Shown one piece after another: positions 5,496-20,781 of a DNA stretch of 64,000 nucleotides (positions are counted from its first letter, which is position 1; each line of letters starts with the position of its first letter). Below the pieces are notes generated by a model. It was not told the origin of the DNA, did not search any database, and was given only the letters and a program-made list of their open reading frames with translations. The DNA lies in the IMG/VR virus record IMGVR_UViG_3300042549_005931, positions 186,001 through 250,000 of that record; one strand, 5' to 3'. A program made the translations under genes and the position numbers.

Positions 5496-5600
5496 TTGAC
5501 TTTTTGAGAAATTATATATATTTATATTCTCATAGGTTCTCTTTGTCGATTACCTTTTCGTTTTTTAAGTAAGTGGAGTTGAATCCACCGAAAGACCTTA

Positions 5601-5629
5601 AAACCCCAGCAACTCGTTGGGGTTTTTTT
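5601..5629 (+). terminator. intrinsic terminator
   Basis: AAACCCCAGC/GTTGGGGTTT hairpin followed by T run. Confidence 0.75.
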
Positions 5630-5676
5630 ATTGGATATTTTGTAGTCTGGTATTTTTTGTGTATATTTAAAAATAT

Positions 5677-5844
5677 ATGAAGAAAATAATTTTAGTTTTT
5701 GCTGTTGGTGTGATGTTCACATTGGCGGCATGTGGTTCAAAGTCTACCACAGAAGGAACAACAGACTCAGTTACAGTTGATACTACTGCAGTATCTGCAA
5801 CAGATTCCACTACAGCTCCTGCTGATAGTTCTGCAACAAAATAA
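5677..5844 (+). CDS. small Ser/Thr-rich lipoprotein
   Basis: MKKIILVFAVGVMFTLAAC lipobox, 55 aa; not in ORF track. Confidence 0.75.
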   Translation: MKKIILVFAVGVMFTLAACGSKSTTEGTTDSVTVDTTAVSATDSTTAPADSSATK

Positions 5845-5880
5845 AAATAGGCCGGTTAATAGCCGGCCATATTTTTTATT

Positions 5881-6462
5881 ATGAAAACACTATTAATATC
5901 ACTTTTTTTATTTTTATTCATTCCTTCAAGGAAGGATGTTAAAATCTTGTTTATAGGAGATAGTCTAACCTGTTATTCAAATGGTTGGCAACATACCGTA
6001 GCAAAAGGTATGGGTATGGGATATGTTAATATTTCAAAGGTCGGTAAAAGAACCGATTGGATGTTAAAAACTTTGGAAAATTATTTAGAAAACGGACCTC
6101 ATCACAATACTTTAATAATATACGGAGGAATTAATGATTCATTTGCCAGAACAAGTGAAATAACTACAATCAATAATATACAATCAATGGTTAACTTAGG
6201 TAACCTATATGAAATGGAAGTTATTGTGATTGTTGGATATGACCCAAATAAAGTTATTAAAAAAACCGTATACACAGACAATGTAACTAAAGTGTGTCGT
6301 GATAGGTATGTCAAATTACAAAACAAAATGCAAGAAAGATTATTGGGATGTAAAATCATACCCATGGATACCACGGTAACATATCAAGATTCAGGAGACG
6401 GTATTCATCTTAAATCCTCAGGACATAAAAAGTTCTCAAGTTGGGTGTTAAAAAATTTATAA
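5881..6462 (+). CDS. SGNH/GDSL hydrolase
   Basis: GDSL, GGIND and DGIH blocks; N-terminal signal. Confidence 0.85.
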   Translation: MKTLLISLFLFLFIPSRKDVKILFIGDSLTCYSNGWQHTVAKGMGMGYVNISKVGKRTDWMLKTLENYLENGPHHNTLIIYGGINDSFARTSEITTINNIQSMVNLGNLYEMEVIVIVGYDPNKVIKKTVYTDNVTKVCRDRYVKLQNKMQERLLGCKIIPMDTTVTYQDSGDGIHLKSSGHKKFSSWVLKNL

Positions 6463-6463
6463 T

Positions 6464-6883
6464 ATGTCAAAGATTAGAATTTATTTAGATGACATTAGAA
6501 CACCTATTGAAGATGGGTGGACCGTTGTTAGAAATTATGAACAATTTGTTAGTACCGTAATGTACAACGGATTGGAAAATATTAATATCATTTCGTTAGA
6601 CCACGATTTAGGAGATACGGCCATGAAAGAATGGCACACTAATGTTTATCATAACTATAAATTAGATTATAATAACATTACCGAAAAAACCGGTATGGAT
6701 TGTGCCAAATGGTTAGTTGAACAATGGATGGACGGTCAACCGGTAGTTGATGTGTTCACACATTCTGCAAACGCTATCGGTAGTGCCAATATCATGGGTT
6801 ACATCAACAATTATAGACACATCAATAGATTACCCCAAAACTGTGTAAGAGTACGTATAGAACATACAACCATAAATTTATAA
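6464..6883 (+). CDS. cyclic-phosphate-processing receiver-like domain protein
   Basis: IYLDDIR, SLDHDLG, HSAN..G motifs. Confidence 0.75.
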   Translation: MSKIRIYLDDIRTPIEDGWTVVRNYEQFVSTVMYNGLENINIISLDHDLGDTAMKEWHTNVYHNYKLDYNNITEKTGMDCAKWLVEQWMDGQPVVDVFTHSANAIGSANIMGYINNYRHINRLPQNCVRVRIEHTTINL

Positions 6884-6885
6884 TA

Positions 6886-7233
6886 ATGGAAACAATGGCA
6901 TATAAAGGAACCACCAAAACCCCATATAGAAAAATGTACATAAAAGGTAAATATGAAGATTTTACCGATTTTTACACTATCAATAAAAGACCAATATATG
7001 AAAATATTATTGAGGTTTTTAAAGGGTTTACCGGTGAAAGTAAAAAAAGAGTATTAACATTGTACATCCAAGCAATAATTCATGGTTTAGAATGGGATAC
7101 TGAATTTAAATTTAATAAATCGGATACCGTCGTTTTATCAAGAGATGTTATACCTTACTTTGAGGAAATAGAAGAATACGAAATTTGTGAGGATGTAAAA
7201 AAATTACACGAAGAGTTGACTACTAAAAAATAA
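6886..7233 (+). CDS. hypothetical protein with C-terminal UVR-like motif
   Basis: ORF ending EEYEICEDVKK. Confidence 0.6.
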   Translation: METMAYKGTTKTPYRKMYIKGKYEDFTDFYTINKRPIYENIIEVFKGFTGESKKRVLTLYIQAIIHGLEWDTEFKFNKSDTVVLSRDVIPYFEEIEEYEICEDVKKLHEELTTKK

Positions 7234-7606
7234 TTACATATATTATTAAAGTATCAGGAGAGAGGTACAATTTCAATCATATTAATTAATTAATATAAAA
7301 ATTCAGAATCCCTACGACTTTTAGTTGTGGGGATTTTTGTTTACTAATAAATAATAATTGTATTATACAAAGAACCTTTTTTAACTTATTAATAAAATCC
7401 TATTTTTCTTTGTTTTTTAATATATTTTTTGTACTTTTACAATAGTTATATTAAAAAAACACAATTATTATGATACAATTAGTATTAATCTTATTTCTTA
7501 TGTGTGGTTCATTAGGTGCCACAATTTCTAAAATGACAACCGAGTATGGTCCTAAAAGACAAAGACAACATACACAACCATTACAGGTTGATAAGGAGGT
7601 AATGTC

Positions 7607-9133
7607 TTAAAGCATCATTCTCGAACCTATCAAGAAGTTACTAAGTACAGGAGTTCCCGGTGCGGTTGAAGCATTAATTTTGTAATTGAAACTGAAACCA
7701 AACCTTTTACTTATTTTAAAATCTACAGAAGTACCCGCCAATATACCAATAGAGTTACCGTAAGATACTTGACCTGTTTTAGTGTTAACACTCATCCCCG
7801 GAGGAATTACAAATATTTGTGGTGATAATGTGAGTTTCTTACTTTGTGGATATGGTTTAGTCCAAAATACAACAGATGAATTACTCAAACTAACATCATA
7901 TCCACCTTTGGTATTTTGTAATAATAATGTAACCAAACCCAAATTATAACCATAAGTTCCCAATTTAGGATTTGGTATAATTTTAGTAAATCCACCCAAA
8001 GCCATTAAACTACCGGATAAATAAGCGGTGGTTAATGAATATGAATTAATAGAGGTTAAAGACCCCTTATCATTTAAATTCATTTTAGTAATACCACCAC
8101 TTAATGCAAATTGTTTAAGATTACTCCAAGTCATTGAATTTAATGAATAACTTTTATCCCCCATCAATGAAGAACGACTCATACCTATTGACAAAATTAC
8201 TGACCATTGGTCACTTGATGTTTGTACGGTTGATAAATCAGAAGCAATTAATAATGGATTTATTGGTGCTTGTTTTGATTCTTTTTTCTTTTCTTCCTTT
8301 TTAGATTCTTTTTTCTCCTCTTTCTTTTCTTCTTTAGATTCTTCCTTCTTTTCTTCTTTTTTAGACTCAGACTTAGATTCTTCTTTCTTTTCCTCAGATT
8401 TACTTTCAGACTTAGATTCTGATTTACTTTCCGATTTAGTTTCACTCTTAGTCTCTGATTTAGTTTCTGATGAAGAACTACTCTTATTGTCAGATGAACT
8501 TGATGATGAACTACTATTATTAGATGAAGATGACGAATTTGAAGATGGTGCAGGTGCCGATGAACTACTTGATGATGAAGCCGATGTCGTTGGTGCTGAT
8601 GGTGTTGGAGGTGGAGTTGCAGCTGATGATGCTGCACTTGAAGCTGAACTACTTGCAGCACTACTAGCTGACGATGAGGCTGCAGAACTTGCGGCAGACG
8701 AGGCGGCACTACTTGCTGCGGATGATGCCGCATTGCTAGCTGCAGAAGAAGCTGCGGAACTTGCTGCCTGAGCCGCGGCTGCACTTGCCGCTTGTGTTGC
8801 TGCTTGTTGGGCCGCGGCAGCTACTGCCTGATTAACCGTTTGTTGAACTGTTTGTTGTACAACCTGATTTGTTGGACAACCGACTGTTGAGTATGTGATG
8901 TATACGGATTGTAACCAAACTTGCATGGCGCCACTTGTTACTTCAGCCGGTGTAAACACCCTCATTTGGTCATAGAAGGAAACATAGGCGTTACCTTTTA
9001 CATAGGTTGTTGTTGCTATTTTTAGTTCCCCACTACACTTATCGATAAACGTTTGTGTAAATGTCTGTGCATCAGCTTTGGAAGCTAGACAAAATATAAA
9101 AAATACACTTAAAAAATTTCTTAACCTTTTCAA
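7607..9133 (-). CDS. secreted protein with Ala/Ser and Lys/Glu low-complexity linker and probable C-terminal beta-barrel
   Basis: signal peptide, SAAS repeats, SESK/EEKK repeats, amphipathic beta-rich C-terminus. Confidence 0.6.
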   Translation of the reverse strand: MKRLRNFLSVFFIFCLASKADAQTFTQTFIDKCSGELKIATTTYVKGNAYVSFYDQMRVFTPAEVTSGAMQVWLQSVYITYSTVGCPTNQVVQQTVQQTVNQAVAAAAQQAATQAASAAAAQAASSAASSAASNAASSAASSAASSAASSAASSSASSAASSSASSAASSAATPPPTPSAPTTSASSSSSSSAPAPSSNSSSSSNNSSSSSSSSDNKSSSSSETKSETKSETKSESKSESKSESKSEEKKEESKSESKKEEKKEESKEEKKEEKKESKKEEKKKESKQAPINPLLIASDLSTVQTSSDQWSVILSIGMSRSSLMGDKSYSLNSMTWSNLKQFALSGGITKMNLNDKGSLTSINSYSLTTAYLSGSLMALGGFTKIIPNPKLGTYGYNLGLVTLLLQNTKGGYDVSLSNSSVVFWTKPYPQSKKLTLSPQIFVIPPGMSVNTKTGQVSYGNSIGILAGTSVDFKISKRFGFSFNYKINASTAPGTPVLSNFLIGSRMML

Positions 9134-9290
9134 TCATTAATATATTACCTTATCTATGTTATTGATAATAGTGTTATTTAATTCCTCATTAAAAAAATGA
9201 GTATAAATCATAACACCATCAAAAATTAACGCACATAAAATGAATGTTAATGTTGCACCCGACAATACTTTATATAATTTTTCCATAATT

Positions 9291-10013
9291 TTATTTTGTA
9301 AAAATACCCTTCTTAATCATTCTATCTAAAATTCTTGCACATGCAATATCAAGGGCTTTCTTTGTTGATATTGAAATTGTTGATTGATTAAACTTAACGG
9401 GGTCAACTGTTGCGTCAGATAATAATGTTAATTCTCTAACTGTTTTAGCTTCACCCAATCCTGATGCACCAAATACAACACCTGTTTCCGCGTCAGTAAA
9501 TCTAACTTGTAGACCTAAACGAGTAACCATCATATTCTTAACACCATCTTTTAAATTAATAGTCTCATCTTCACTTACTGAATAATCATAACATTCAATT
9601 GTTACAAAGTATTTTGCTAAGTTAATTTTACCCCTACCATCTAACTTGTTTTCCGATATACCCGCTTGAGATGCTTGGAATTGTTTTACCATACGATTCT
9701 TAATTTCTGTTTTATCTTCAGTAAATTTAAAACGATTAAGGTTTTCCAAATATTCCATTGAAATATTGGCAACACCAAGACCAACTCTTTTTTCTTTTAA
9801 CTCAGGATACATTTCATACATCTCATCTGAGATACCACATTTTAATATTTGAATAGGGATTTGTGGTCCTTCATAGTCCATGTATTTTGAAATGTCAATT
9901 GCAGTTTCAAATGATGCTTTATATTGTTCCGTCTTTGTGGAACCCACAGTTTGAGAAACCCCCAAAAATGGTAGTAATACTACTGATATTACAATAAAAA
10001 TAAACTTCTTCAT
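9291..10013 (-). CDS. CsgG/HfaB-like secreted protein
   Basis: signal peptide; LGLQVRFTDAETGVV..ASGLGEA resembles CsgG family. Confidence 0.6.
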   Translation of the reverse strand: MKKFIFIVISVVLLPFLGVSQTVGSTKTEQYKASFETAIDISKYMDYEGPQIPIQILKCGISDEMYEMYPELKEKRVGLGVANISMEYLENLNRFKFTEDKTEIKNRMVKQFQASQAGISENKLDGRGKINLAKYFVTIECYDYSVSEDETINLKDGVKNMMVTRLGLQVRFTDAETGVVFGASGLGEAKTVRELTLLSDATVDPVKFNQSTISISTKKALDIACARILDRMIKKGIFTK

Positions 10014-10025
10014 ATTTTTTAAATT

Positions 10026-11096
10026 TTAAAACCATTTACGTGGATTCATTTTCTTTCCCACTTTTTCTAATTCCTTACCGGCCTTTTTACCTGTGTCAAC
10101 AATTGCATTACCTGTCTTTTTAGCAGCATCATCCAATGCTTTCTGAGCGGCGGCCGCCTGTTCTTTAGCAACTCTTTCAGTTTCTCTCGCAGCGTCTTCT
10201 AGGGCCTTTTGAGTTGCTGCAGCTTGTTCTTTTGCAATTCTATCGGCCTCTCTTGCTGCATTTTCAGCTTCCTCTGCCGCTTGTTTAGCTAATTTTTCAC
10301 TTTCTTCATATGCATCTACCGCAGCTTCTTGTATTGGTTTAGTATCAACACTAACACTCAAATCAATTTCAACACCCGCGATTAATGCTACTTCACCACT
10401 AATACCAACTGTAGCAACACCATCTTCCATAGTTGCACCACCCTCAACCTCACCACCAACTTGTGCTCCGATACTTACTTCAGCACCCACACTACCACCG
10501 TTACCACTTTCATCGTATGCACCTGTTGAACCGCCAGCACCCACACTAACACCAGCAATTGCTCCTGCGTGTACACTTGCTCCATCTTCACCGATTTGGG
10601 CACTTCCACCCGCATACGCTTCAGCTTCAGCACCTGCGTGACCTTCTTGTGTAATTGTAACCCCATCAACCTCAACACTAACACTAGCACCCGCTTCAAC
10701 ACTAGCACTTGCTTCCACTTCTGCGGTAACACTTGCATTACGACCATCCCATCCGGCACTTGCATTGGCGGACGCTTCGGCTTCTGCACTTACATGGGCT
10801 TCCGCTTCAATATCAACACCACCAATTGTTGTTTCGGCACTAACACCAGCTTCCGCACTAACACCAACTTCAGCAGTTGCGGCAACTGACGTATCAGTAA
10901 CTTCAACACCCGCACTTGCGTGTGCTTCAGCACTTGCTTCAGCAGTTAAAGTTATACCTTCAATTTCAGTACTTACTGAAACTTCATCCTCAACACTTAC
11001 AGTTTCTTGAGGTTCTGCGGTTATTTGACCACCACCCGTATTGAAACCAATTTCAGGTCCGTTCTCTTCGTTTTCTTGTTTTTGTTCTTCTGACAT
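10026..11096 (-). CDS. Ala/Gly/Val/Glu-rich repeat protein with C-terminal coiled coil
   Basis: alternating AEAS/AGVS beta-repeats, then KEQAAA repeats. Confidence 0.6.
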   Translation of the reverse strand: MSEEQKQENEENGPEIGFNTGGGQITAEPQETVSVEDEVSVSTEIEGITLTAEASAEAHASAGVEVTDTSVAATAEVGVSAEAGVSAETTIGGVDIEAEAHVSAEAEASANASAGWDGRNASVTAEVEASASVEAGASVSVEVDGVTITQEGHAGAEAEAYAGGSAQIGEDGASVHAGAIAGVSVGAGGSTGAYDESGNGGSVGAEVSIGAQVGGEVEGGATMEDGVATVGISGEVALIAGVEIDLSVSVDTKPIQEAAVDAYEESEKLAKQAAEEAENAAREADRIAKEQAAATQKALEDAARETERVAKEQAAAAQKALDDAAKKTGNAIVDTGKKAGKELEKVGKKMNPRKWF

Positions 11097-11154
11097 TTTT
11101 ATAATTTGTTTTACTAATAAATATCAAAAAAGGGAGAATAAATCTCCCTTCTTA

Positions 11155-11406
11155 TTAACCTTCCATTTCGTTCTCTTTCTTTTTGTGTGAGAACTTATCC
11201 AAGGTGTCGGCACCCATCCCAATGCCAGTTATCAACATCACCGCATTTACCAAATCAGGTGACGGTGCAAAATCTGCGTGAGAAAATGAATTTAATATCA
11301 TAGTCACACATAAAAATGTTGCACCTAAAAATGCGATTACCGGTTTTACTGAAATTGAACCTCTTTCATCTTTAAAGATTTCAATTACCCATTCTTTGAA
11401 TTTCAT
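11155..11406 (-). CDS. small two-TM membrane protein (holin-like)
   Basis: two hydrophobic helices, charged C-terminus. Confidence 0.5.
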   Translation of the reverse strand: MKFKEWVIEIFKDERGSISVKPVIAFLGATFLCVTMILNSFSHADFAPSPDLVNAVMLITGIGMGADTLDKFSHKKKENEMEG

Positions 11407-11435
11407 ATTATTTGTGTTTTGTGTTTGTTTATTTA

Positions 11436-12071
11436 TTATCCTTCCATATCTGTGGTATCGATATCTTTTATCTTACCACAAATTAGACATTCTTCATCAC
11501 CGTCACCATCTGAGTCACCCCATACGTGTTGACAATTACGGTGGTCAAAATATTCGTCAATTACTCCATCACCATCAAAATCTAAACCATCCATTACACC
11601 ATCACCATCCTCATCAATTTCAACACCTACTTTGGTTTGTTTTTCTTCCGATTTTGATACTGTGGGTATAAATTCAGTCTCATTTTTAAACTGTGAATTT
11701 GATATTGCCTGTGTAAACGATTCTGGTACGATTGGACTATAACTTGGTTTACTTTCACCATCTTTATCATTAGTATTTGAAAGTGATATACCATCTTCTT
11801 CGTCCATCTTCTGAACTAACATTTTATCTTTATCTGTATCTGAGAACCAATAATCTACAATCTTACCATACGAACCAATAAAGGCCCCAAGTAATAGTAA
11901 TAGTAATTCTTTCCAAGCTCCAGTAATTTCTGCTTTAAGTACAATTGCTCCACCGATACCAAATACCGTACCCATAAAGGTCAATAACACAATAAGTGTC
12001 ATGTTCCATCTACGAGTCATCATCTGGTTTAGAAGGTCTCTAAATCCCGTGTTTTCTTGTTGTTGTTCCAT
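11436..12071 (-). CDS. membrane protein with DxDGDG Ca-binding repeats
   Basis: two TM helices; DEDGDG, DFDGDG, DSDGDG motifs. Confidence 0.6.
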   Translation of the reverse strand: MEQQQENTGFRDLLNQMMTRRWNMTLIVLLTFMGTVFGIGGAIVLKAEITGAWKELLLLLLGAFIGSYGKIVDYWFSDTDKDKMLVQKMDEEDGISLSNTNDKDGESKPSYSPIVPESFTQAISNSQFKNETEFIPTVSKSEEKQTKVGVEIDEDGDGVMDGLDFDGDGVIDEYFDHRNCQHVWGDSDGDGDEECLICGKIKDIDTTDMEG

Positions 12072-12088
12072 ATTATGTTTTTATTAAA

Positions 12089-12412
12089 TTACCAAGCTGG
12101 TTCTTTTTCTTTAAACTCATCACCTTCTTTTTTCTTAGGTTTTGGTGCCGGCGCGGGTGCTCCCTGTGCCGACTGTCCACCTCCACCACCTTTGTTGATG
12201 ATTACAGTTTTACCCGCAGCTTGTTGTTGTGCTTGATTTTGGGTAATGTTTATTACAGGTGCCGCTGCAGGTGCCGCTGCCGGTTGGTCACCACCACCGA
12301 ACATTTGAGAACCTAACCAAGCTCCCCCTGCCGTTACTATCGTGCCAACTGTCCCGATTAGTGTTTTTACTAATCCTGACATTGTTCCTTCATTTTGTGA
12401 TTCTTCTGACAT
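12089..12412 (-). CDS. single-TM hypothetical protein
   Basis: ORF with N-terminal hydrophobic segment. Confidence 0.6.
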   Translation of the reverse strand: MSEESQNEGTMSGLVKTLIGTVGTIVTAGGAWLGSQMFGGGDQPAAAPAAAPVINITQNQAQQQAAGKTVIINKGGGGGQSAQGAPAPAPKPKKKEGDEFKEKEPAW

Positions 12413-12441
12413 AATCTTTTTTTTTGTTTTTTTAGTTTATT

Positions 12442-12813
12442 TTATAATTTATTAAAGTCTGCTATCCCAAGTAAGTTTCCTTCTAAATCGAATAGACCAA
12501 TTCTATAAGCCGAAGATGGTAAAGCCTTTGTGTAAATCTTTAATAGATTGTTTCCTGCTTTAATTGTTACTTCTTCTTTTGATACTGACTTATTTGCAAT
12601 GTTTAATATCTTTACTACATATGTACCGGCAGTTTCGGTTTTTACGTTCATGGCAACTTCTTCTTTTACGAATGGTGTTTCCACTTTAATTCCTACGTTA
12701 CCCATTATTTGTAATTTTTCAGTTACTTCGGTTGGTGCCGGTACTAACATATCTTCACTAGTACAGCTAATAACTGTTAAAACCACCATTAATAATCCGA
12801 TTACTTTTTTCAT
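12442..12813 (-). CDS. lipoprotein with small Ig-like domain
   Basis: VISC lipobox; paralog of next gene (shared KIYTK.LPS). Confidence 0.65.
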   Translation of the reverse strand: MKKVIGLLMVVLTVISCTSEDMLVPAPTEVTEKLQIMGNVGIKVETPFVKEEVAMNVKTETAGTYVVKILNIANKSVSKEEVTIKAGNNLLKIYTKALPSSAYRIGLFDLEGNLLGIADFNKL

Positions 12814-12829
12814 TTTTTTTTGTTTTTTT

Positions 12830-13174
12830 TTATTTTACTATTATTATTGTGTTTGCTAACTGATTATTAAAACTATCTTCTAGTTTTAAATATAAATATC
12901 TGCTAGGTAATGTTTTGGTGTAAATTTTTATTTTATTATTACCGGTAATACATTTTATTTTCTCTCTACTAATAACCTGATTAGTATTTTTATCTATCAT
13001 AGTTACAATGTACATACCTTCTTTTTCTACATTAAAACTAATTTCAGTTTTATTTGAAACTGTAGATTGCTCTATCTTAAAAACATCAATCGGTTGAGGT
13101 ATTTCTATATTCTCATTTTTACATGAAATCATACAAATTAAAAAACATAAGAATGTGATTTTAATATTTTTCAT
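12830..13174 (-). CDS. lipoprotein with small Ig-like domain
   Basis: MISC lipobox; GNN.IKIYTK.LPS shared with 12442..12813. Confidence 0.65.
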   Translation of the reverse strand: MKNIKITFLCFLICMISCKNENIEIPQPIDVFKIEQSTVSNKTEISFNVEKEGMYIVTMIDKNTNQVISREKIKCITGNNKIKIYTKTLPSRYLYLKLEDSFNNQLANTIIIVK

Positions 13175-15105
13175 TATAGGTTTTTAATTTTAAGTGTTGA
13201 ACCATTTAAATTTACCGCATCTATCCCCTCAATTGATGTTATTCCAATTGTATTTGTTATTGTTTCTTTTGGTGTAAAAATTAATTTGTATTCCGTAGTA
13301 TCATCTAATAATCCGGTTCCATTATAAATCAAAGAACCAAAGTTTATATTATTACCATTATCATTTGAAAAATTTGTAGGATTTCCGGTAGTTGTATATT
13401 CAGTATTTTCGTATTTTAAAATATCACTATCGTAATTTAATTTTAACTGAATACCTTTTACCGATTGTCCTAACGTATTTAGTTTTACATTCACCACTAC
13501 CTTACCATCAACCATTTCACTTAATACATATGTGGAAACCTCCATAGGTGTAGTTAAATTCATAGTACGATTTACACTTGCGGTAGTTTGTGTATTTTGT
13601 GCCGGCGTATGTGATAAGTTTACGTCACCCTTTAGTGATACTACAACATTATAAACGTAATCAGTTATACCGGCATCAACAGCCAATGGGTAGTTTGCCT
13701 TATATGGAACATTTATAGACACCCAATTTGATTTAGTTATACCATCAAATGTAGTTTTATTTACTAATCTAAATAAATTATCTTCACTCCAAGTTGAAAC
13801 TATGGGTGTACCACCTATTACATGTTGTAATATTCTGTACGAATCTTTTTCATTGAATACGTTATTACCATCCACATCACCATTTAAGAATTGTACACCA
13901 TTTGTAAACGAATTACTTTCAGTCCCACTTAATCCTCTATTTGCTAACTCTTGAAACGCCAAATAAGCATCACCCACAGTTAACACACTACTATAAAGAT
14001 TTGATAAAGTAGCTGACGGTAATTTGGATAGATACATAACCATATCCGTTTTACTTTTAACAAAATCACTAATGTTATTCACACTACCATTTGTACCCAA
14101 CGCTAAACCCGCAGTTGCACTAACGGCAGTTGTACCATTTGCAGTATAGTTTTTTACTGACCATTGTGATGGATTTATCCCACCACCAAAATAAAAATTA
14201 ACCTTTGATGTTGGAACATCTATGGGGTTTATTACGTTTGCCGAATAAAAGTTTGTAAATGTTTGTGAATTTGGGTTAGTCCAAGTTCCATATTCAATCA
14301 CATATGGGTTAGTCCAATTGTTTGATAAATCGTTCCATTGATTACCATTCCATTTTGTTACAGCATAATTTTCACTTCCATTAACACCATTTGGTTCACC
14401 CGGTGCCCAGTTGTTATATACGCCGGTAATATTTCCCGCCGTTTGACCATTTTGAGTTTTCATTACAGTTCCCTTTTCGGGTCCTGCATCAATTACCCAT
14501 CTACCTTCCGTTACCTCATCGGTTGCCGCAAACCATATATTAGTTTGCGGTACGTTTGCCTGAATAAACGCATCTTCATTTGCAGATGTGATTGTCACCA
14601 AATATCCTGTTTGTCCTTTGAATGTTGTTAATAAAGATGCTGCTCTTGCTCCGGTATAAGTATCACCGGGAGTTATGGGTTTGTAAAAGTGTCCATTTAT
14701 TGGATTATAATAAAATCCGGGTGGATTTATAGTAGCTGATACTGATACCTGAACACTACCCGCAGTTGCACCTGTGTTTATTTTTAAGGTGGCTAACGCC
14801 GCATTTATATTTGCTTGTGTACCGGTGAATACCAATAATGTTTTATTACCTGTAAAATTAAATCCTGATGCCGGAGTTAAACCCGTTGTTGTGGTTAAAG
14901 TAAATGATGTACCTGTTGGTGGATTAATAAATCCTATTGATGCCAATAAAATATCGGTAGAAGTAAATCCATTCAAAACAAATCCACTACACGCCTGCCC
15001 ACTTACGTTTAATTCAAACTTTTTGGGTGCAGGTTGTGTAATGGATTGTGCTATAGATATACTACTAGATAATAATATTAATATTACAACAAGTAGTTTT
15101 CTCAT
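13174..15105 (-). CDS. secreted C-type lectin + dockerin-like + cohesin-like protein
   Basis: NNWAPGEPN and WND lectin motifs; GDVDGNNVFNEKDSY dockerin-like; GIQLKLNYD cohesin-like. Confidence 0.7.
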   Translation of the reverse strand: MRKLLVVILILLSSSISIAQSITQPAPKKFELNVSGQACSGFVLNGFTSTDILLASIGFINPPTGTSFTLTTTTGLTPASGFNFTGNKTLLVFTGTQANINAALATLKINTGATAGSVQVSVSATINPPGFYYNPINGHFYKPITPGDTYTGARAASLLTTFKGQTGYLVTITSANEDAFIQANVPQTNIWFAATDEVTEGRWVIDAGPEKGTVMKTQNGQTAGNITGVYNNWAPGEPNGVNGSENYAVTKWNGNQWNDLSNNWTNPYVIEYGTWTNPNSQTFTNFYSANVINPIDVPTSKVNFYFGGGINPSQWSVKNYTANGTTAVSATAGLALGTNGSVNNISDFVKSKTDMVMYLSKLPSATLSNLYSSVLTVGDAYLAFQELANRGLSGTESNSFTNGVQFLNGDVDGNNVFNEKDSYRILQHVIGGTPIVSTWSEDNLFRLVNKTTFDGITKSNWVSINVPYKANYPLAVDAGITDYVYNVVVSLKGDVNLSHTPAQNTQTTASVNRTMNLTTPMEVSTYVLSEMVDGKVVVNVKLNTLGQSVKGIQLKLNYDSDILKYENTEYTTTGNPTNFSNDNGNNINFGSLIYNGTGLLDDTTEYKLIFTPKETITNTIGITSIEGIDAVNLNGSTLKIKNL

Positions 15106-16733
15106 TACTCTACATTTAATCCAATCTTATTTCCTTTTCCATCAACTGCATCTGCTAATTCAGTATAGAATAAACCTGCTGTATTTGTTAGTGGAACATT
15201 AGATGTGAAAGTTAATTTGTATGGTGTACCAGTTTTTATTCTAGCAGTTTTAATTTGGTCTATTGAACCAAATGTTAATCTTCCATCTTTATTAGTTGAG
15301 AAGTTAGTTATAGATGAACCCGCATCAAATGCAATACCATCCAATGTTAATTTAGAATCATCGTATTTCAAAATAACTTCTAATCCAGCTAATCCTTCTT
15401 GTGATAAATTACCCGTTAAAATAACTTTATTGTTTTCAATTTTAGATGATAAACTTAATGTTGCCGTTCCTGATAATTGATTAGCGTATATACCTTTATT
15501 TGCAACTGTTCTATTCATAGTTCCTTGTCCACCTGTACTATTTCCTGATATTGGTGAACCAGGGTTAGATGAGTGTGAGAAATCCAAATCACCACCAAAA
15601 GCGTATGAAAATAATTCTACTTGATTTGCCGAAGTTATTTTAACTACGTTGTTTGATGGTTCACCACCTACTATGTTTGGAAATGCCGATTGCTTTACCG
15701 ATATAAAATTTAATTCAGTTGCATTTTGTTTTGTTATTCTTGCTTTTGAAGATACATCTTGTCCTAAAATGTGTGCAAATAAGTAATAAGCATCATTTGT
15801 ATTAAAATCACCATCATTAAGTGTTACATTACCAATTGCCTTTTCTATTGCGGGATATTGGAATATAGATGATGTACCATTTAATCCAACATCTGTTACT
15901 GCTAAAAAGGCTCTATAGGCATCTGTTACTGTTACTACGTTATTTAAGTAACTTGCTCCAAAAGTTGGAACAATATAAACACCAAGTGTATCACCAATAT
16001 TAAATTGTTCAAAATCAACTATACCACCAGAACTTAATGGTTTTTGTGATATTGGTGCTCCAGTAAAGTTTGTACTTCCATTGGGATTTACTTTTCTTAT
16101 TTGTACGGATAGTGATGTAATATCAAAATTAGTTGGATACCCAACTTTTACTCTAAATGCTGAAACGTGCTTCACATCAGCATCTGCAAATGATAATTGA
16201 AGAACTTGAGAACCAATTGGTGTGATAGGTGCATCATTTGTTCCTGTTGCAGTTGCTAAATCTAATTTATGTATTCCTTGATAAGTTGAGTTTTCTAATA
16301 AGATAAATCTTTCAGTTGCCCACAAACCATCAATTACCGCATCTGCTCTTTGTGTTGTAAATTGCTTCGATATCCAATCGTTATCTTGTGTATAGTTCCA
16401 AGGTGTTGAAGCATATTGTGCATTCAATTCACCAACTCCAATTGATGGGTTTTGTGTGAATTTATAGTTTGGCCAAGTTGCTTCAAAATTTTGTGCGGTT
16501 TGTCCTTGTGAGAATAAAGTAGGTCCTAACTTTTGTAAGTGTTTGTTTGAGTATTGATAACGCATCCAAAGGTATCTAGGGTTTGTAGTTCCTTTGATAA
16601 TATTATATCTTACAGTAAGTGTGTCACCAACTCTGTAAGGTTTTGAATTAACCACCTCTTGATTGATGATTAATTGCCCAAATGATGTCAATGACATCAG
16701 TATTAATGAGAGAGATACTAATAGTTTTTTCAT
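15105..16733 (-). CDS. secreted dockerin-like + cohesin-like protein
   Basis: signal peptide; VTVTDAY...FNTNDAY; GLEVILKYD; paralogous C-terminal half to 13174..15105. Confidence 0.6.
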   Translation of the reverse strand: MKKLLVSLSLILMSLTSFGQLIINQEVVNSKPYRVGDTLTVRYNIIKGTTNPRYLWMRYQYSNKHLQKLGPTLFSQGQTAQNFEATWPNYKFTQNPSIGVGELNAQYASTPWNYTQDNDWISKQFTTQRADAVIDGLWATERFILLENSTYQGIHKLDLATATGTNDAPITPIGSQVLQLSFADADVKHVSAFRVKVGYPTNFDITSLSVQIRKVNPNGSTNFTGAPISQKPLSSGGIVDFEQFNIGDTLGVYIVPTFGASYLNNVVTVTDAYRAFLAVTDVGLNGTSSIFQYPAIEKAIGNVTLNDGDFNTNDAYYLFAHILGQDVSSKARITKQNATELNFISVKQSAFPNIVGGEPSNNVVKITSANQVELFSYAFGGDLDFSHSSNPGSPISGNSTGGQGTMNRTVANKGIYANQLSGTATLSLSSKIENNKVILTGNLSQEGLAGLEVILKYDDSKLTLDGIAFDAGSSITNFSTNKDGRLTFGSIDQIKTARIKTGTPYKLTFTSNVPLTNTAGLFYTELADAVDGKGNKIGLNVE

Positions 16734-17242
16734 AGTTTTTCCGTTAATTTGTTAATTAATGTTTGACATGTTTTTTTAATTGAAGACGAAAGTGCTTGTT
16801 GATTTATAGTTTCACTCGCCTCACCTGTTATTATTGTTGATGTTGAAACTTCCGAACTGGATTCTTCAGCCACATACTCTTTTATTTTCTTTCCTTCTTT
16901 GTTTTTTATTACTCCACGAATAACAACCAATGTTTCCTCAACGTCTGAGTGAAATACCGATACGTTACGTTTTGTTCTATTTACATCGAAGTATAGAATT
17001 TCTGCACTAATGACAAAATCTGCAGATTCTGAACTTTCTACAATGTCCAAATTTTTATCTTGTAAAATTTCTTGAAAAATATTCTTTACCCCGAAAGCAA
17101 AATTTCGATTGCCGGTAAACTTTCCTATTTTAATTTTATTGTCAACATTTGACACACACACAGTCTGAGCGACTGCACCAAAACCAGATATTAGCACAAA
17201 GAATGCCAGTATCAAAAAAGTGGAGAGAGGTACTTTTTTCAT
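16730..17242 (-). CDS. secreted protein, CsgG/LptE-like fold suspected
   Basis: signal peptide; first gene of the surface operon. Confidence 0.45.
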   Translation of the reverse strand: MKKVPLSTFLILAFFVLISGFGAVAQTVCVSNVDNKIKIGKFTGNRNFAFGVKNIFQEILQDKNLDIVESSESADFVISAEILYFDVNRTKRNVSVFHSDVEETLVVIRGVIKNKEGKKIKEYVAEESSSEVSTSTIITGEASETINQQALSSSIKKTCQTLINKLTEKL

Positions 17243-17659: not shown

Positions 17660-17732
17660 GTCTATGTGGCGCAACGGTTAGCGCTCCGACCTGATACGTC
17701 GGCGGTTGGTGGTTCGAATCCATCCATAGACA
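17660..17732 (+). tRNA. tRNA-Ile(GAT)
   Basis: cloverleaf, loop CTGATAC. Confidence 0.92.
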
Positions 17733-17737
17733 CATTT

Positions 17738-17810
17738 GGAGACGTAGCTCAGTTGGTAGAGCACCGGCCTGAAGAGCCGGGTGTCGGTGGTTCAAATCCA
17801 CCCGTCTCCA
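17738..17810 (+). tRNA. tRNA-Phe(GAA)
   Basis: cloverleaf, loop CTGAAGA. Confidence 0.95.
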
Positions 17811-17816
17811 CATTTT

Positions 17817-17890
17817 GACCTCTTAGCTCAGTTGGTTAGAGCACCTCACTTTTAATGAGGGAGTCCCGCGTTCGAGTCGCGGAGGGGTCA
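17817..17890 (+). tRNA. tRNA-Lys(TTT)
   Basis: cloverleaf, loop CTTTTAA. Confidence 0.95.
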
Positions 17891-17895
17891 CACAC

Positions 17896-17967
17896 GCGTC
17901 TATGGTGTAATTGGCAGCATACCGGTCTCCAAAACCGGCGGTCGAGAATCGTTGTCTCGTGGACGTG
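17896..17967 (+). tRNA. tRNA-Trp(CCA)
   Basis: loop CTCCAAA; atypical T-loop ATCGTTG. Confidence 0.85.
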
Positions 17968-17972
17968 CAAAT

Positions 17973-18044
17973 AGTTCTATGGTGTAATGGATAGCACCTG
18001 ACACTACGGATGTCAAAGTTGGAGTTCGAGTCTCTATGGAACTA
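17973..18044 (+). tRNA. tRNA-Arg(ACG)
   Basis: cloverleaf, loop CTACGGA. Confidence 0.92.
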
Positions 18045-18052
18045 CGTTAAAA

Positions 18053-18127
18053 GGTGAATTGGCTGAGTGGTCAAAAGCAACGGTCTGCAAAACCGTACAA
18101 TCGTTGGTTCAAATCCAACATTCACCT
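18053..18127 (+). tRNA. tRNA-Cys(GCA)
   Basis: cloverleaf, loop CTGCAAA, U73. Confidence 0.92.
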
Positions 18128-18128
18128 C

Positions 18129-18203
18129 GGTGACTGTCGTCTAATGGTAGGACAAAGGTTTGTGGTGCCTTCAATAAGAGTTCGATTCTCTTCAGTCACA
18201 CCA
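18129..18203 (+). tRNA. tRNA-His(GTG)
   Basis: loop TTGTGGT, encoded G-1 and CCA. Confidence 0.9.
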
Positions 18204-18208
18204 TATAT

Positions 18209-18276
18209 TGCGGGGAGGAGGGTTCCCAACCAGTCTCATAAGCTGTGTTTTCCGGTTTCGACTACCGGCCCCGCAA
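18209..18276 (+). tRNA. tRNA-Met(CAT), atypical
   Basis: TGCGGGG/CCCCGCA acceptor, loop CTCATAA, shortened D-arm. Confidence 0.7.
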
Positions 18277-18340
18277 CAAAATATTTTAGATTTTTTTTAC
18301 ATATATTTTTTTATTTAAAAAACTTCTTTTATATTTGTCA

Positions 18341-18477
18341 TAAGATAATGGTTTTCACCATTCAACGGATGTCGACAATCCAGAGTGGAACCTGAAAACA
18401 TAACCCTCTGCCGAGCGCTCATAAAACTGAAGAAGCAGTCAAGAATGGAACGAAACGGGTATTCCATCATTATCTTA
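18341..18477 (+). ncRNA. unidentified structured RNA
   Basis: 12-bp closing stem TAAGATAATGGT/ATCATTATCTTA, internal stems, TATATTTG promoter just upstream. Confidence 0.55.
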
Positions 18478-18480
18478 CAG

Positions 18481-18554
18481 GCTCCCTTAGCTCAGTTGGC
18501 CGGAGCGCCTCACTTGTAATGAGGATGTCGGCGGTTCGAATCCGTCAGGGAGCT
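18481..18554 (+). tRNA. tRNA-Thr(TGT)
   Basis: cloverleaf, loop CTTGTAA. Confidence 0.95.
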
Positions 18555-18560
18555 CAACAA

Positions 18561-18701
18561 GGTTCTATAGTTGTTTAGGTCGCCCCTTAAACAATGAGTG
18601 GGTTAATGATGGTTTAGTATTACTACCCGATATTCTAGATGAAGCGTGGTAAGTGATTAAACAAGTAATTAACGAGATGGGTTCGATTCCCATTAGAGCC
18701 T
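18561..18701 (+). ncRNA. tRNA-like RNA (acceptor + T-arm, expanded interior)
   Basis: GGTTCTA/TAGAGCC acceptor, ATGGG-TTCGATT-CCCAT T-arm, no canonical anticodon arm. Confidence 0.6.
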
Positions 18702-18750
18702 CAAAACATAGGATTAATTACCCTATGTATGGATGGTTCGAAACATCCGA

Positions 18751-18824
18751 TTGATTATGGTGTAATGGTGCACGGAGACCGTAATTGGAGCTCAGGATTA
18801 AGGTTCAAGTCCTTTTTAATCAGC
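18751..18824 (+). pseudogene. degenerate tRNA
   Basis: TTGATTA/TAATCAG acceptor, TGGTGTAATGG D-arm, GGTTCAAGTCC T-arm, broken anticodon arm. Confidence 0.5.
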
Positions 18825-18829
18825 AACAA

Positions 18830-19215
18830 GTGACGACTGTGGTGTAACCCCACGGTATATGAAATCCAAAATGGTCCTGTTGAAGCCGGAATAGTCATAC
18901 AGGTCAGGAGAGAGTTAGTATAAGTTGGGAGTAATTAACCAATTGACGAAAACTAATCACCAAGAAATTGGTCATGATGTCCAACGGGGATAATAAACTT
19001 GTTAATTTGTTAATTTAAGTTCTGGTGGGTTTTATTAAATAATTTTGTTTCATTTTAAACAATTTTAGTTATAAGGAAGTTGAAGAATTGTAACCACCAA
19101 CATAGAAATTAGATTAACAAAGTTTAATTACGGGAGGTGTCTCGTATAACTAATACAATCCCCTAATAGGGACTGATGTAAGATTAAGATTCTTACGACA
19201 CCGAACGTGATTGGA
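18830..19215 (+). ncRNA. unidentified ~390-nt structured RNA
   Basis: nested long-range stems, no ORF. Confidence 0.45.
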
Positions 19216-19224
19216 TTATTAACC

Positions 19225-19299
19225 GCCCCTATCGACAAGCGGTTAAGTCACGTCCCTTTCACGGATGAGTCACGGGTTCGATTCCCGTTGGGGGTACCA
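19225..19299 (+). tRNA. tRNA-Glu(TTC)
   Basis: cloverleaf, loop CTTTCAC, CCA encoded. Confidence 0.95.
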
Positions 19300-19310
19300 A
19301 AAGTTTTATT

Positions 19311-19559
19311 ATGTTAGAACAAATATTGGAGTACTTTGGGGAAGAAGAATTTCTTAAAGCGGACGGATTCGATGAAGCCGTTATTGGTGTTGAAGAAAGT
19401 TCGATGAGACTAATCTATTCAGTTACCAAATGTCTTGAGATATTGGTTACCAATGAAGAGATGTCATTAGAAGAAGCTATTGAGTATTTTGACTTTAATG
19501 TTAGAAGTGCTTATGTAGGTGATAAAACACCCATTTGGTGTGAGGATGGTTTTATGTAA
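19311..19559 (+). CDS. hypothetical phage protein
   Basis: ADGFDEAVIG...EAIEYFDFNV...AYVG motif typical of large phages. Confidence 0.7.
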   Translation: MLEQILEYFGEEEFLKADGFDEAVIGVEESSMRLIYSVTKCLEILVTNEEMSLEEAIEYFDFNVRSAYVGDKTPIWCEDGFM

Positions 19560-19560
19560 T

Positions 19561-19749
19561 ATGAAAAAAATAATATATCTACTAATTGTAATTTTTACAT
19601 TATCCGGTTGTTTTACTTATGTAAGAGAAACTGGTAGATTTTACCCACGTAATAGAAATTTACAACCAAACCATAGAATGGGTATTAACGGTTACCATTT
19701 AAGAAATCAATATTATTTTAGACATATTCAACCATTAAAAAAAAGATAA
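19561..19749 (+). CDS. small lipoprotein
   Basis: MKKIIYLLIVIFTLSGC lipobox from ATG 19561. Confidence 0.6.
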   Translation: MKKIIYLLIVIFTLSGCFTYVRETGRFYPRNRNLQPNHRMGINGYHLRNQYYFRHIQPLKKR

Positions 19750-19791
19750 AGGATTGATTTTCAACATTTTTATATTTATAATAAAAAAGAT

Positions 19792-20139
19792 ATGTTAGAC
19801 TTAAAAGAACTTTTAATTATGCTAGGATTGGCGGTTGGTGGACCATCACACAGTCAAGATATGACTTTTTATCGACAAAAATTATCTAATGAAATGGTTT
19901 TAGAACAAAAACTAAAAGAAGAAATTAAAGCCTTAGAATATAGAAAACTTTGGGACGATGTAAATCAAAAAGAAAATGCAGATTTTGCAGTTAGGTGGTT
20001 TAAAGATAAAAAATCGGAAGATAAATTAGGTAGTTCAAAAAAAGATTTAAATAACACAAGAAAAAAAATAAAAGTATTAAAAAATATCCTTGAAAAAGAT
20101 TCATTAGATAAGGTAGTACCTCAAACTCAGGTACTTTAA
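19792..20139 (+). CDS. hypothetical coiled-coil protein
   Basis: ORF preceded by TATTTATA. Confidence 0.6.
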   Translation: MLDLKELLIMLGLAVGGPSHSQDMTFYRQKLSNEMVLEQKLKEEIKALEYRKLWDDVNQKENADFAVRWFKDKKSEDKLGSSKKDLNNTRKKIKVLKNILEKDSLDKVVPQTQVL

Positions 20140-20178
20140 TTTATTTTCGGATATTTATATATTATAAAAACAAAAATT

Positions 20179-20601
20179 ATGAAAAAATTATTATTTATTT
20201 TCGCGTTAGTTCTTGGTTGTACTTTTAGTTCAACTGCTCAAGAATTGTTTGGTTCCGCAACTAACAAAGGTATGGACGGATACTTAACTGGTGGTTACAT
20301 CAAAAAAGGATGGGGTGCCTATGTTGGTTTTAGATATGATGCTGACCCTATGGTTAGTACTAAAACAGGTAGCTTTGATAAAACTATGAAATTTGGTGTT
20401 ATTCGTATGTTTGCGAGTGAGAAAATTATGATGGGTGTGGGAATCCAACCTGTCGATAATGTTAACAAACCAAATGTTTTTATTGGTTACGCACCATTAA
20501 AATCGGAAGGATTGAAGATATGGGTTATTGGTAATTTAGTAGGTTCTAATTTTACACCAGGTCTTGGTTTAACTTATAAATTATCACAAATTAATTTTTA
20601 A
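20179..20601 (+). CDS. small outer-membrane beta-barrel-like protein
   Basis: signal peptide, Gly/aromatic beta strands, terminal Phe. Confidence 0.55.
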   Translation: MKKLLFIFALVLGCTFSSTAQELFGSATNKGMDGYLTGGYIKKGWGAYVGFRYDADPMVSTKTGSFDKTMKFGVIRMFASEKIMMGVGIQPVDNVNKPNVFIGYAPLKSEGLKIWVIGNLVGSNFTPGLGLTYKLSQINF

Positions 20602-20627
20602 AAATTTACTATTAAATAAAACTTTTG

Positions 20628-20635
20628 TATATTTG
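20628..20635 (+). promoter_or_regulatory. Bacteroidota-type -7 promoter element for leader 2
   Basis: TATATTTG 18 nt before leader ATG. Confidence 0.6.
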
Positions 20636-20653
20636 TATATACTTATTAGAAAA

Positions 20654-20758: not shown

Positions 20759-20781
20759 TAAATAAAAAAACTAAAATAAAG

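Follow-up and report, generated by a model that had tools for sequence, protein, structure and literature searches.

Here we report an analysis of a 64,000-nucleotide stretch of DNA (the window), representing bases 186001-250000 of a single 269,133-bp IMG/VR contig (IMGVR_UViG_3300042549_005931; CheckV completeness estimate 81%), and specifically of a gene cassette at window positions 7607-17242 that is predicted to encode a CsgG-like protein together with cohesin, lectin, lipoprotein and outer-membrane barrel proteins. The contig belongs to a T4-like jumbo phage from lakes. It is assigned to a phage because it carries a T4-type major capsid protein (Pfam Gp23, E 1e-63), a large terminase gene and, within the window, 22 tRNA genes and a tmRNA, and to lakes because near-identical DNA is found in lake-water and freshwater metagenomes of 15 studies. 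The window is closely preceded by the capsid and large terminase genes, which map to 174-183 kb of the contig, and GC content is ~32%. The hosts are most likely freshwater Bacteroidota of the Flavobacterium type.

The cassette comprises 11 co-oriented open reading frames (ORFs), named P1 to P11 in transcription order. An earlier reading of the same letters (hereafter the original prediction) had described about 12 co-oriented genes; the common orientation held, and the count is 11. The features are as follows (SPI, signal peptidase I; TM, transmembrane segment; aa, amino acids).

16730-17242, minus strand: P1, 170 aa, signal peptide and putative YajG-like (Pfam Lipoprotein_16) periplasmic domain, no lipobox
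15105-16733, minus strand: P2, 542 aa, SPI signal peptide, N-terminal region without assigned family
15756-15944, minus strand: dockerin-like calcium-loop/helix segment of P2 (~aa 264-326)
15108-15464, minus strand: predicted cohesin domain of P2 (~aa 424-542)
13174-15105, minus strand: P3, 643 aa, SPI signal peptide
14299-14613, minus strand: predicted lectin domain of P3 (aa 165-269)
13810-13992, minus strand: dockerin-like segment of P3 (~aa 372-432)
13177-13539, minus strand: predicted cohesin domain of P3 (~aa 523-643)
12830-13174, minus strand: P4, 114-aa lipoprotein (lipobox ..ISC), predicted small Ig-like beta-sandwich
12442-12813, minus strand: P5, 123-aa lipoprotein, acidic residues after the lipid Cys
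12089-12412, minus strand: P6, 107 aa, single Gly/Thr-rich TM between an acidic N-terminus and a basic tail with terminal Trp
11436-12071, minus strand: P7, 211 aa, two TM, highly conserved juxtamembrane motif (alignment A7)
11155-11406, minus strand: P8, 83 aa, two TM, charged C-terminus, holin-like or Imm-like in shape only
10026-11096, minus strand: P9, 356 aa, acidic Ala/Glu/Ser/Val repeats, helical K/E/A-rich C-terminus, no export signal
9291-10013, minus strand: P10, 240 aa, predicted CsgG-family protein, SPI signal peptide instead of a lipobox
7607-9133, minus strand: P11, 508 aa, TTG start, SPI signal peptide
8885-9064, minus strand: Cys-bounded N-domain of P11 (aa 24-83)
8267-8884, minus strand: linker of P11
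7610-8266, minus strand: predicted barrel of P11 (aa 290-508)

Ten of the 11 proteins, all except P9, carry a signal peptide, a lipobox or a membrane segment, which bears out the original prediction that most of them would. SPI-type signal peptides, assigned by simple rules, are present in P1, P2, P3, P10 and P11, lipoboxes in P4 and P5, one membrane segment in P6, and two each in P7 and P8. A crude hydrophobicity screen classed nine of the 11 cassette proteins as signal-peptide- or TM-like, compared with 38 of 269 proteins (14%) genome-wide, an enrichment with a binomial chance of ~1e-6; the Gly/Thr-rich segment of P6 fell just under the screen cut-off. The lipobox is kept in 45 of 46 P4 orthologues and 47 of 50 P5 orthologues, and a small residue followed by Gln occupies the predicted SPI cleavage site in 66/70 P2, 49/53 P3, 81/92 P10 and 101/102 P11 orthologues, against a Gln-after-cleavage rate of 19% among background ORFs. 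This pattern is known as the 'Bacteroidetes Q-rule' for SPI cleavage sites (PMC5837995). In addition, many P5 orthologues read C-x-K-(D/E)2 after the lipid Cys, which matches the published consensus for surface export of Flavobacteriaceae lipoproteins (PMC5080379). Judged from sequence, the export signals of the cassette obey Bacteroidota-specific rules. Comparison of the 9.6-kb block with the phage collection by megablast gave no match, a PHROGs scan of P1-P10 matched no family, and NCBIfam gave noise only.

P10 was placed in the CsgG family through Pfam matches of its relatives, hhalign and its predicted fold. By itself it matched no Pfam family and no PDB sequence, and a profile of alignment A1 (P10 and 32 relatives) missed CsgG among PDB sequences. 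Its protein-language-model (Atlas) neighbours were CsgG/HfaB clusters, and an exhaustive search of 50%-identity representatives with P10 yielded 206 clusters. Among the A1 members, 13 of 33 matched Pfam CsgG (PF03783, best 1.9e-17) and six matched LpoB, and hhalign paired the A1 profile with E. coli CsgG over 227 columns (probability 93%, E 3e-7). AlphaFold2 (AF2) structures cover P10 and P11. The P10 model (predicted local distance difference test, pLDDT, 80.6) contains a long hairpin at residues 135-174 (18-19-residue hairpin), the top 15 Foldseek matches to it were all CsgG (E 5e-7), and the VIA aligner scored CsgG at Z 12-12.7 versus Z 8-10 for PelC, LptE and TraT (TraT 7.9). Taken as remote homology plus predicted fold, these results make P10 a CsgG-family protein.

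Compared with E. coli CsgG, the channel of type VIII secretion (PDB 4uv3, 6l7a), P10 is predicted to share the alpha/beta fold with two long hairpins, aligned over 167-197 residues at these Z-scores, and full-length profile homology. The constriction-loop residues of E. coli CsgG, which we take to be Tyr51, Asn55 and Phe56, were reportedly described by Goyal et al. in 2014. The constriction Tyr-Pro is kept as Y69-P70 in the P10 family, with P70 invariant and Y69 in at least 90% of rows, whereas the Asn and Phe are not conserved, their positions aligning with Lys and a gap. The first hairpin of P10 is also ~5 residues shorter than that of CsgG. The signal peptide of P10 ends in ..VSQ, and a lipobox occurs in one of 92 phage orthologues; distant A1 relatives carry ..GC. 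P10-type sequences are abundant, with 6394 matching database proteins at E<=1e-3, of which the best 120 of 6394 were 87-100% identical. That P10 is far more conserved than its cassette neighbours points to strong constraint, such as a conserved host partner or assembly into an oligomeric channel might impose.

P11 is confidently predicted to end in a 12-stranded outer-membrane beta-barrel. In the AF2 model, residues 290-508 form 12 long strands (pLDDT 80-92), Foldseek matched them to NanC, PcoB, BrkA, EspP and FapF, and all Atlas neighbours belonged to outer-membrane barrel families. VIA Z-scores of 17.7 (NalP), 17.1 (CymA), 16.8 (OmpG), 16.5 (EspP), 15.3 (KdgM) and 15.0 (FapF) correspond to 12-14-stranded outer-membrane barrels and single out no class among them. 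P11 orthologues share one plan (alignments A3 and A8), namely a signal peptide, a Cys-bounded domain of ~60-70 residues, a linker of ~200 residues and a beta-rich domain of ~215 residues. The linker is of low complexity, Ser/Ala-rich and then Lys/Glu-rich, and is disordered in the AF2 model; ahead of strand 1 come a short helix (276-284) and the motif NP-x-L-x-x-SDL, which is conserved, and the placement of a long low-confidence helix is unreliable. P11 resembles the known 12-stranded barrels (NalP, EspP, KdgM/NanC, FapF; Z 15-17.7) and, in its N-terminal extension and linker, FapF and the autotransporters; its linker and small Cys-bounded N-domain, however, differ both from passengers that are known and from the coiled coil of FapF, and it lacks a sequence-family match. 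None of 17 P11 orthologues matched Pfam Autotransporter or Fap, and one matched DUF5777. The N-domain and linker may be periplasmic, in a FapF-like manner or as a tether, or may be displayed outside as in autotransporters. Some loci carry an additional 297-aa paralogue of the P11 barrel.

Lectin_C (PF00059) matched P3 with 29.9 bits against a cut-off of 22.6, and a profile search retrieved the lectin domains of CEL-I, MBP-A and SP-D from the PDB (E 7e-7 to 1e-4). The EPN (~aa 237-239) and WND (~aa 257-259) motifs of the calcium/sugar site are intact and conserved in alignment A11; from EPN, ligands of the mannose, GlcNAc or fucose type are predicted. P3 therefore has, on sequence grounds, a C-type lectin domain with an intact predicted sugar-binding site. 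The cohesin is assigned at the level of the family: P2 reached 17.4 bits with Pfam Cohesin (PF00963), below the 24.1 cut-off, while 14 of 20 P2/P3-type proteins matched this model (best 9e-7, several above the cut-off), and the P2/P3 family profile matched cellulosomal cohesins in the PDB at E 1.6e-4. Between the heads and the cohesin lies the dockerin-like segment, in which one canonical 12-residue D-x-D-x-N...D calcium loop plus helix and one degenerate repeat were read by eye. The original prediction had described P2 and P3 as two paralogues each combining dockerin-like and cohesin-like modules. The cohesin is supported, the paralogy is confined to the C-terminal ~280 residues (P2 266-539 versus P3 374-640, 26% identity, E 2e-14), and the dockerin-like part stands at the level of a motif. 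The heads of P2/P3-type proteins in relatives are PA14, GLEYA or LCCL domains. Relative to cellulosomes (for example the ScaB cohesin, PDB 4ums), the cassette has a recognisable cohesin and a calcium loop plus helix resembling the dockerin F-hand, but differs in its Bacteroidota host, its phage genes, its lectin/adhesin heads in place of enzymes, its degenerate putative dockerin, and its proposed anchoring by a sorting tail or lipoprotein rather than by SLH domains or sortase.

IMG/VR scans returned 528 relatives in one scan with P10 as query and 23 loci with P2, and synteny was judged in 103 fetched IMG/VR loci. The order P1-P2-P3-P4-P5-P6-P7-(P8)-(P9)-P10-P11 is constant across these loci and is shared by more than 90 IMG/VR phage contigs, with P9 present in three of 103 and P8 in 14-17, depending on the search. 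P10 is the most conserved cassette gene, at 77-96% identity across loci, as against 21-91% for P2/P3; the identities of P1, P2, P3 and P11 run from ~20-45% up to 94%. Shorter cassettes encode one cohesin protein of ~700 aa and one lipoprotein. Insertions concentrate on either side of P10, in the gap that follows P7/P8 and in the gap ahead of P11, and include 2-oxoglutarate (2OG)-Fe(II) oxygenases.

Two further lineages extend the comparison. Among phages in culture, only the Flavobacterium phages vB_FspM_immuto (Baltic Sea; 160 kb) are relatives, and they have a reduced cassette consisting of gp013 (annotated C-type lectin), gp014, gp015 (annotated cohesin), gp016 (P6), gp017 (P10, 53% identity) and gp018 (P11-like) and adjoining replication and nuclease genes. 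A remote 103-kb phage contig (L106) encodes P7-like, P6-like and P11-like proteins, a lipoprotein-type P10 (43% identity) and a cohesin protein of 629 aa. At the position of P1 this contig has a secreted protein of 151 aa in which a metalloprotease-like HExxH motif occurs (6999-7454), and a lysin-like gene lies just upstream. Because P6, P10, P11 and the cohesin/lectin genes remain linked in all three diverged lineages, they probably form one functional unit. In cellular genomes, a single-protein scan of GTDB genome contigs for P10 relatives found only two small contigs of metagenome-assembled genomes (MAGs), one of 2.7 kb assigned to Thiobacillus and one of 9 kb assigned to Micavibrio (L115 and L116; P10 identity 84-85%), which are most likely phage contigs mis-binned into the MAGs. 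Distant bacterial CsgG-like relatives, in Nitrospinota and another group, have neighbours that are not cassette-like.

The cohesin proteins of relatives suggest how such proteins might reach the cell surface. The C-terminal sorting domain (CTD) of cargo of the type IX secretion system (T9SS) directs export across the Bacteroidota outer membrane, usually onto the cell surface. The immuto protein gp015 consists of a signal peptide, a cohesin and a T9SS CTD and nothing else, and over its full length it can be aligned with the stretch of the L106 protein that comprises cohesin and Por_Secre_tail (E 3e-24). Por_Secre_tail scored 42 bits on the cohesin protein of L106 (cut-off 27) and 22.6 bits on that of L047. 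Since these cohesin proteins of immuto, L106 and L047 end in a sorting domain, like Bacteroidota T9SS cargo, delivery to the cell surface appears likely in the related phages. P2 and P3, in contrast, both end with the cohesin, and the sorting domain (PF18962) was not found in either; the CTD likeness of P4/P5 is sub-threshold.

Copy numbers offer a possible substitute for the missing tail. Of the loci with both cassette ends, 37 encode two cohesin proteins and two lipoproteins and 21 encode one of each, while the lineages with T9SS-tailed cohesins (L047, L050, L106 and immuto) have no small lipoprotein. This matching of numbers, together with the absence of the lipoprotein from tailed lineages, points to a dependence of every tail-less cohesin protein on a lipoprotein of its own, and this lipoprotein would take over from the T9SS tail the task of anchoring the protein or helping its export. 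In addition, dockerin-like loops occur on proteins that lack a cohesin, namely immuto gp013 (the lectin), gp014 and L106 a398, so that dockerin-like and cohesin parts are fused in P2/P3, separate in immuto and partly separate in L106. Modules that are fused in one genome and split in another are a classic hint of joint function, and on this ground pairing of the two parts is implied. The original prediction had raised the possibility that P2 and P3 polymerise; cohesins that bind separate dockerin-like lectins or cognate lipoproteins would fit the comparative pattern at least as well.

We consider that the cassette may encode an envelope module by which the phage displays lectins on the Bacteroidota cells that it infects, a reading to which we give about as much belief as doubt. 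The phage would install these envelope proteins, all parts except P9, through the host Sec pathway. Non-lipidated, CsgG-like P10 and the P11 barrel would reside in the outer membrane, P1 and the N-domain and linker of P11 in the periplasm, and P6, P7 and P8 in the inner membrane, with P4 and P5 as lipoproteins, the latter bearing a surface-export signal. P2 and P3 would be the cargo and working end, in which variable sugar-binding heads sit on a conserved dockerin-like plus cohesin module, and the cohesin would tie them to a surface anchor, a T9SS sorting domain fused to the cohesin protein in related phages and, here, most likely one cognate lipoprotein per cohesin protein. P10 and P11 are natural candidates for carrying tail-less proteins to the surface. 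The net effect would be a lectin-bearing coat that changes what the infected cell sticks to or what reaches its surface. The analysis shows the genes with their signals, the synteny, the folds and domain families and the co-variation; the localisation, the cohesin partners and the P10/P11 export route for proteins without a T9SS tail are inferred. The fast-evolving heads point to binding of variable glycans, either on other cells or particles (adhesion, aggregation) or on the host itself (receptor masking). Candidates for the biological role are adhesion, keeping other phages out, the control of lysis and the capture of nutrients.

That the phage builds a structure in the host envelope, as first proposed with superinfection exclusion, adhesion or anti-grazing as conceivable roles, is the best-supported reading in view of the Bacteroidota export rules and of the T9SS tail on the cohesin protein of relatives. 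The parts named in that proposal were recovered as well: a CsgG-like protein in P10 (by Pfam matches of relatives, hhalign, Foldseek and VIA), a C-type lectin in P3, lipoproteins in P4/P5 and a beta-barrel in the C-terminal domain of P11 (by AF2 and structure matches). Neither outcome named beforehand as speaking against the proposal, structure predictions without CsgG/cohesin folds or missing synteny, was observed; the gene order recurs in 103 loci and a CsgG fold is predicted. More specifically, the phage could build a surface organelle that combines a CsgG-type channel without lipid anchor, a 12-strand barrel, a cohesin-dockerin scaffold and exchangeable lectin heads, the scaffold being tethered through the host T9SS or through dedicated surface lipoproteins. 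We regard this fuller version as possible but doubtful. If true, it would be the first phage-encoded cohesin-dockerin display system and would give phage CsgG homologues a concrete job.

Several observations weigh against lectin display by an envelope module. First, P10 lacks the lipid anchor that defines CsgG, and no CsgE, CsgF or curlin-like substrate was matched in the cassette by Pfam, NCBIfam or PHROG. CsgG channels pass unfolded chains, and export by P10 of multidomain proteins of 540-640 aa such as P2 and P3 is therefore speculative. Second, the dockerin-like segment has a single canonical calcium loop and is recognised at motif level; Pfam Dockerin matched none of 20 P2/P3 family members, and PDB dockerins matched the P2/P3 profiles at E 0.1-0.7 only. 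Third, few independent events in evolution underlie the co-variation of cohesin proteins and lipoproteins, and the idea that P4/P5 derive from a T9SS CTD that split off was not confirmed by hhalign, which gave probabilities of 1-3% against two true CTDs. Fourth, lysins stand in or beside the cassette in some relatives, and no RNA run with the locus was present among the sequencing runs matching near-identical DNA. Finally, because a terminator-like hairpin (11127-11153) follows P8, the block is probably divided into at least two transcription units, P1-P8 and P9-P11.

The cassette proteins could also belong to the virion, as fibres or decoration proteins with lectin and cohesin domains, and phage fibres and capsid decorations do bear domains of the lectin, Ig-like and cohesin-like kinds. 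We regard this explanation as very improbable: Sec signals, lipoboxes and T9SS domains direct proteins out of the cytoplasm, where virions are assembled, P1-P10 have no structural match in PHROGs, and the capsid and terminase genes lie outside the window.

P4 and P5 are paralogous lipoproteins with ~95 mature residues, and sub-threshold matches in their family were to DUF3244 (12 of 31) and Por_Secre_tail (10 of 31). PF03923 matched nine of 13 P1 orthologues (best 2.2e-6) but not P1 itself, which gave weak matches to TraT and others. A lipobox is present in four of 71 P1 orthologues, in many of which an N-terminal membrane-anchor extension replaces the signal peptide (alignment A2), and the profiles of P1 and P10 agree in a 25-column motif only (probability 11%). 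P6 has a conserved stretch, VINITN..QQQ / TVII, in alignment A6, which includes immuto gp016 and the L106 lineage, and in minimal cassettes its gene is immediately upstream of, or overlaps, the CsgG-like gene (overlap in immuto and L106). As a CsgF analogue P6 was rejected on sequence, its profile matching E. coli CsgF at a probability of 0.1%, so that the analogy is one of position only. P7 has an accessory C-terminal tail of Asp-rich, calcium-loop-like repeats and a Cys/His cluster that is absent in short forms of 111-116 aa. P8 had no PHROG or Pfam match. P9, with a local GC of 0.40 and a GC skew of -0.33 that differ from its neighbours, looks like a recent accessory insert.

Small membrane proteins together with lipoproteins are the typical make-up of exclusion systems, and the cassette may accordingly serve superinfection exclusion or receptor masking. 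The lectins, the Ser-rich P11 stalk, the lipoproteins and the small inner-membrane proteins would then cover or alter surface glycans or gliding/T9SS-dependent receptors, leaving other phages, or the phage's own progeny, unable to adsorb to or inject the infected cell. P8 (83 aa, two TM) resembles T4 Imm in size and topology, with no sequence match between them. The surface-exclusion lipoprotein TraT belongs to the fold class of P10 (Z 7.9), the weak matches of P1 include TraT and YajG, and fast-evolving sugar-binding heads would fit an arms race. The immuto cassette, moreover, is on the same strand as, and beside, replication and nuclease genes. None of the components, however, has a match among known exclusion proteins, and 11 genes with an outer-membrane channel go far beyond what known systems need. 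The timing of expression gives no help either: searches for a Bacteroidota promoter pattern and for the T4-late TATAAATA motif were uninformative, and a sigma-70 scan gave matches below shuffle expectation. Exclusion is, in our view, unlikely to be the purpose of the cassette.

The two-TM topology that P8 shares with the N-terminal part of P7 is also holin-like. In a lysis or lysis-timing scheme, P6-P8 would fill the places of holin, antiholin or spanin-like proteins, and outer-membrane pores of P10/P11 would permeabilise or depolarise the envelope, as has been hypothesised for the CsgG(F) pore of methylophage Melnitz (PMC9004378). Among relatives, L046 encodes a glycoside hydrolase family 19 (GH19) lysin inside its cassette, L027 has such a gene 1.9 kb upstream of the cassette, and in L106 a lysin-like gene adjoins it. 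In the present genome the GH19 endolysin (PG_binding_1 plus GH19, 280 aa; 52563-53405) has no evident holin beside it, but it lies ~35 kb from the cassette. The P1-P10 proteins have no holin or spanin match in PHROGs, proteins with lectin, cohesin and T9SS-tail domains would be out of place in lysis, and P4/P5 are predicted folded Ig-like domains rather than Pro-rich o-spanins. A role in lysis thus seems improbable.

The L046 variant (5028-9766) is relevant to nutrition as well. Between P6 and P10 it holds four extra genes, encoding the GH19 lysin, a 197-aa lysin-like protein, a 752-aa TonB-dependent-receptor-like protein (Plug plus OMP barrel) and a 400-aa lipoprotein, and by sequence the last two are a phage-borne SusC/D-like pair. 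The cassette might then be a polysaccharide-utilisation-like complex of cohesin-scaffolded glycan binders and extra pores, feeding the cell through a long jumbo-phage infection. The intact sugar-binding site of the lectin would suit such a complex, cohesin-dockerin pairs are best known from polysaccharide-degrading cellulosomes, and uptake through phage CsgG has been suggested for pelagimyophages (PMC7029224). The cassette itself, however, has no glycoside hydrolase and no inner-membrane sugar transporter, and the TonB-receptor insert is confined to one lineage. Moreover, we know of no CsgG-type channel that imports nutrients. Nutrient capture is accordingly a quite improbable main function in our judgement.

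Phage CsgG clusters have been published before, as the csgF-csgG 'curli operon' of pelagimyophages (HTVC008M) and of methylophage Melnitz (PMC7029224, PMC9004378), and adhesion or aggregation would be in line with the 'sibling capture' idea put forward there (PMC7029224). Like the present cassette, these operons are found in T4-like aquatic myophages, place a CsgG-family outer-membrane protein in a variable region between small TM and secreted proteins, occur in hosts without curli and have no proven function. In contrast, CsgG of HTVC008M is a canonical lipoprotein (Pfam CsgG E 1.8e-54) encoded beside CsgF and curlin-repeat proteins, whereas P10 and immuto gp017 fall below the Pfam CsgG model, lack a lipobox and CsgF- or curlin-like neighbours, and are linked instead to cohesin, lectin, lipoprotein and 12-strand-barrel genes. 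The immuto genome has no Pfam CsgG match, and tblastn found no link between the pelagimyophage-type and P10-type groups. In HTVC008M (L114:2901-7964), three single-TM proteins (93, 93 and 41 aa) precede csgF-csgG, and three secreted proteins with curlin-like ..I-x-Q/N.. repeats follow; small membrane proteins followed by the channel parallel the layout of P6-P8 and P10, with no sequence similarity. Full-text literature searches found no paper joining CsgG, phage and cohesin, or describing the immuto cassette. By sequence, the cassette represents a second, very divergent and very abundant phage CsgG-like lineage, based on cohesins, lectins and lipoproteins.

The surroundings of the cassette were also annotated. 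The tRNA array (22 genes, plus strand; 17660-24601 and 29469-29870, including the tmRNA, whose tag peptide ends in ..NVAVA) lies directly upstream of the cassette start and is interspersed with HNH endonuclease and 2OG-Fe(II) oxygenase genes (21404-21943 and 22259-23387). Facing the cassette end is a plus-strand trio (5881-7233) of a GDSL/SGNH hydrolase, a cREC_REC protein ('cyclic-phosphate processing receiver', E 7e-22) and a 115-aa protein, followed by a strong terminator hairpin (7305-7337). At 2940-5495 lie genes of chaperone type. One encodes a Clp/ATP-dependent-protease-like AAA+ protein of 673 aa (phrog_4871, E 1e-240), the other, on the opposite strand, a small heat-shock protein (HSP20), and both are conserved beside the cassette in many related contigs too. 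Further along, a glycosyltransferase/methyltransferase gene cluster (36808-44084) includes a 417-aa glycosyltransferase with 49% identity to those of the Xanthomonas/Stenotrophomonas jumbo phages XacN1, Xoo-sp13, CM1 and RAS14. The endolysin gene stands beside the divergently transcribed gene of a 153-aa secreted protein, glucosaminidase-like by eye (52563-54017), with no obvious holin next to the pair.

In lake metagenomes, few phage proteins are as widespread and conserved as those of the P10 type, yet they are annotated as hypothetical. In marine pelagimyophages, CsgG homologues have since 2020 been an acknowledged puzzle, and here a phage CsgG homologue is tied to proteins with readable functions, namely lectins, cohesins, a T9SS tail and surface lipoproteins. 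The cultured pair of immuto and Flavobacterium sp. LMO8 makes the question directly testable. A non-lipidated CsgG-type pore and cohesin-based pairs for Bacteroidota are possible tools. If infected Flavobacteriia do change their stickiness, this would be relevant, in lakes and in seas, to carbon flux, to aggregation and to the attachment of cells to particles.

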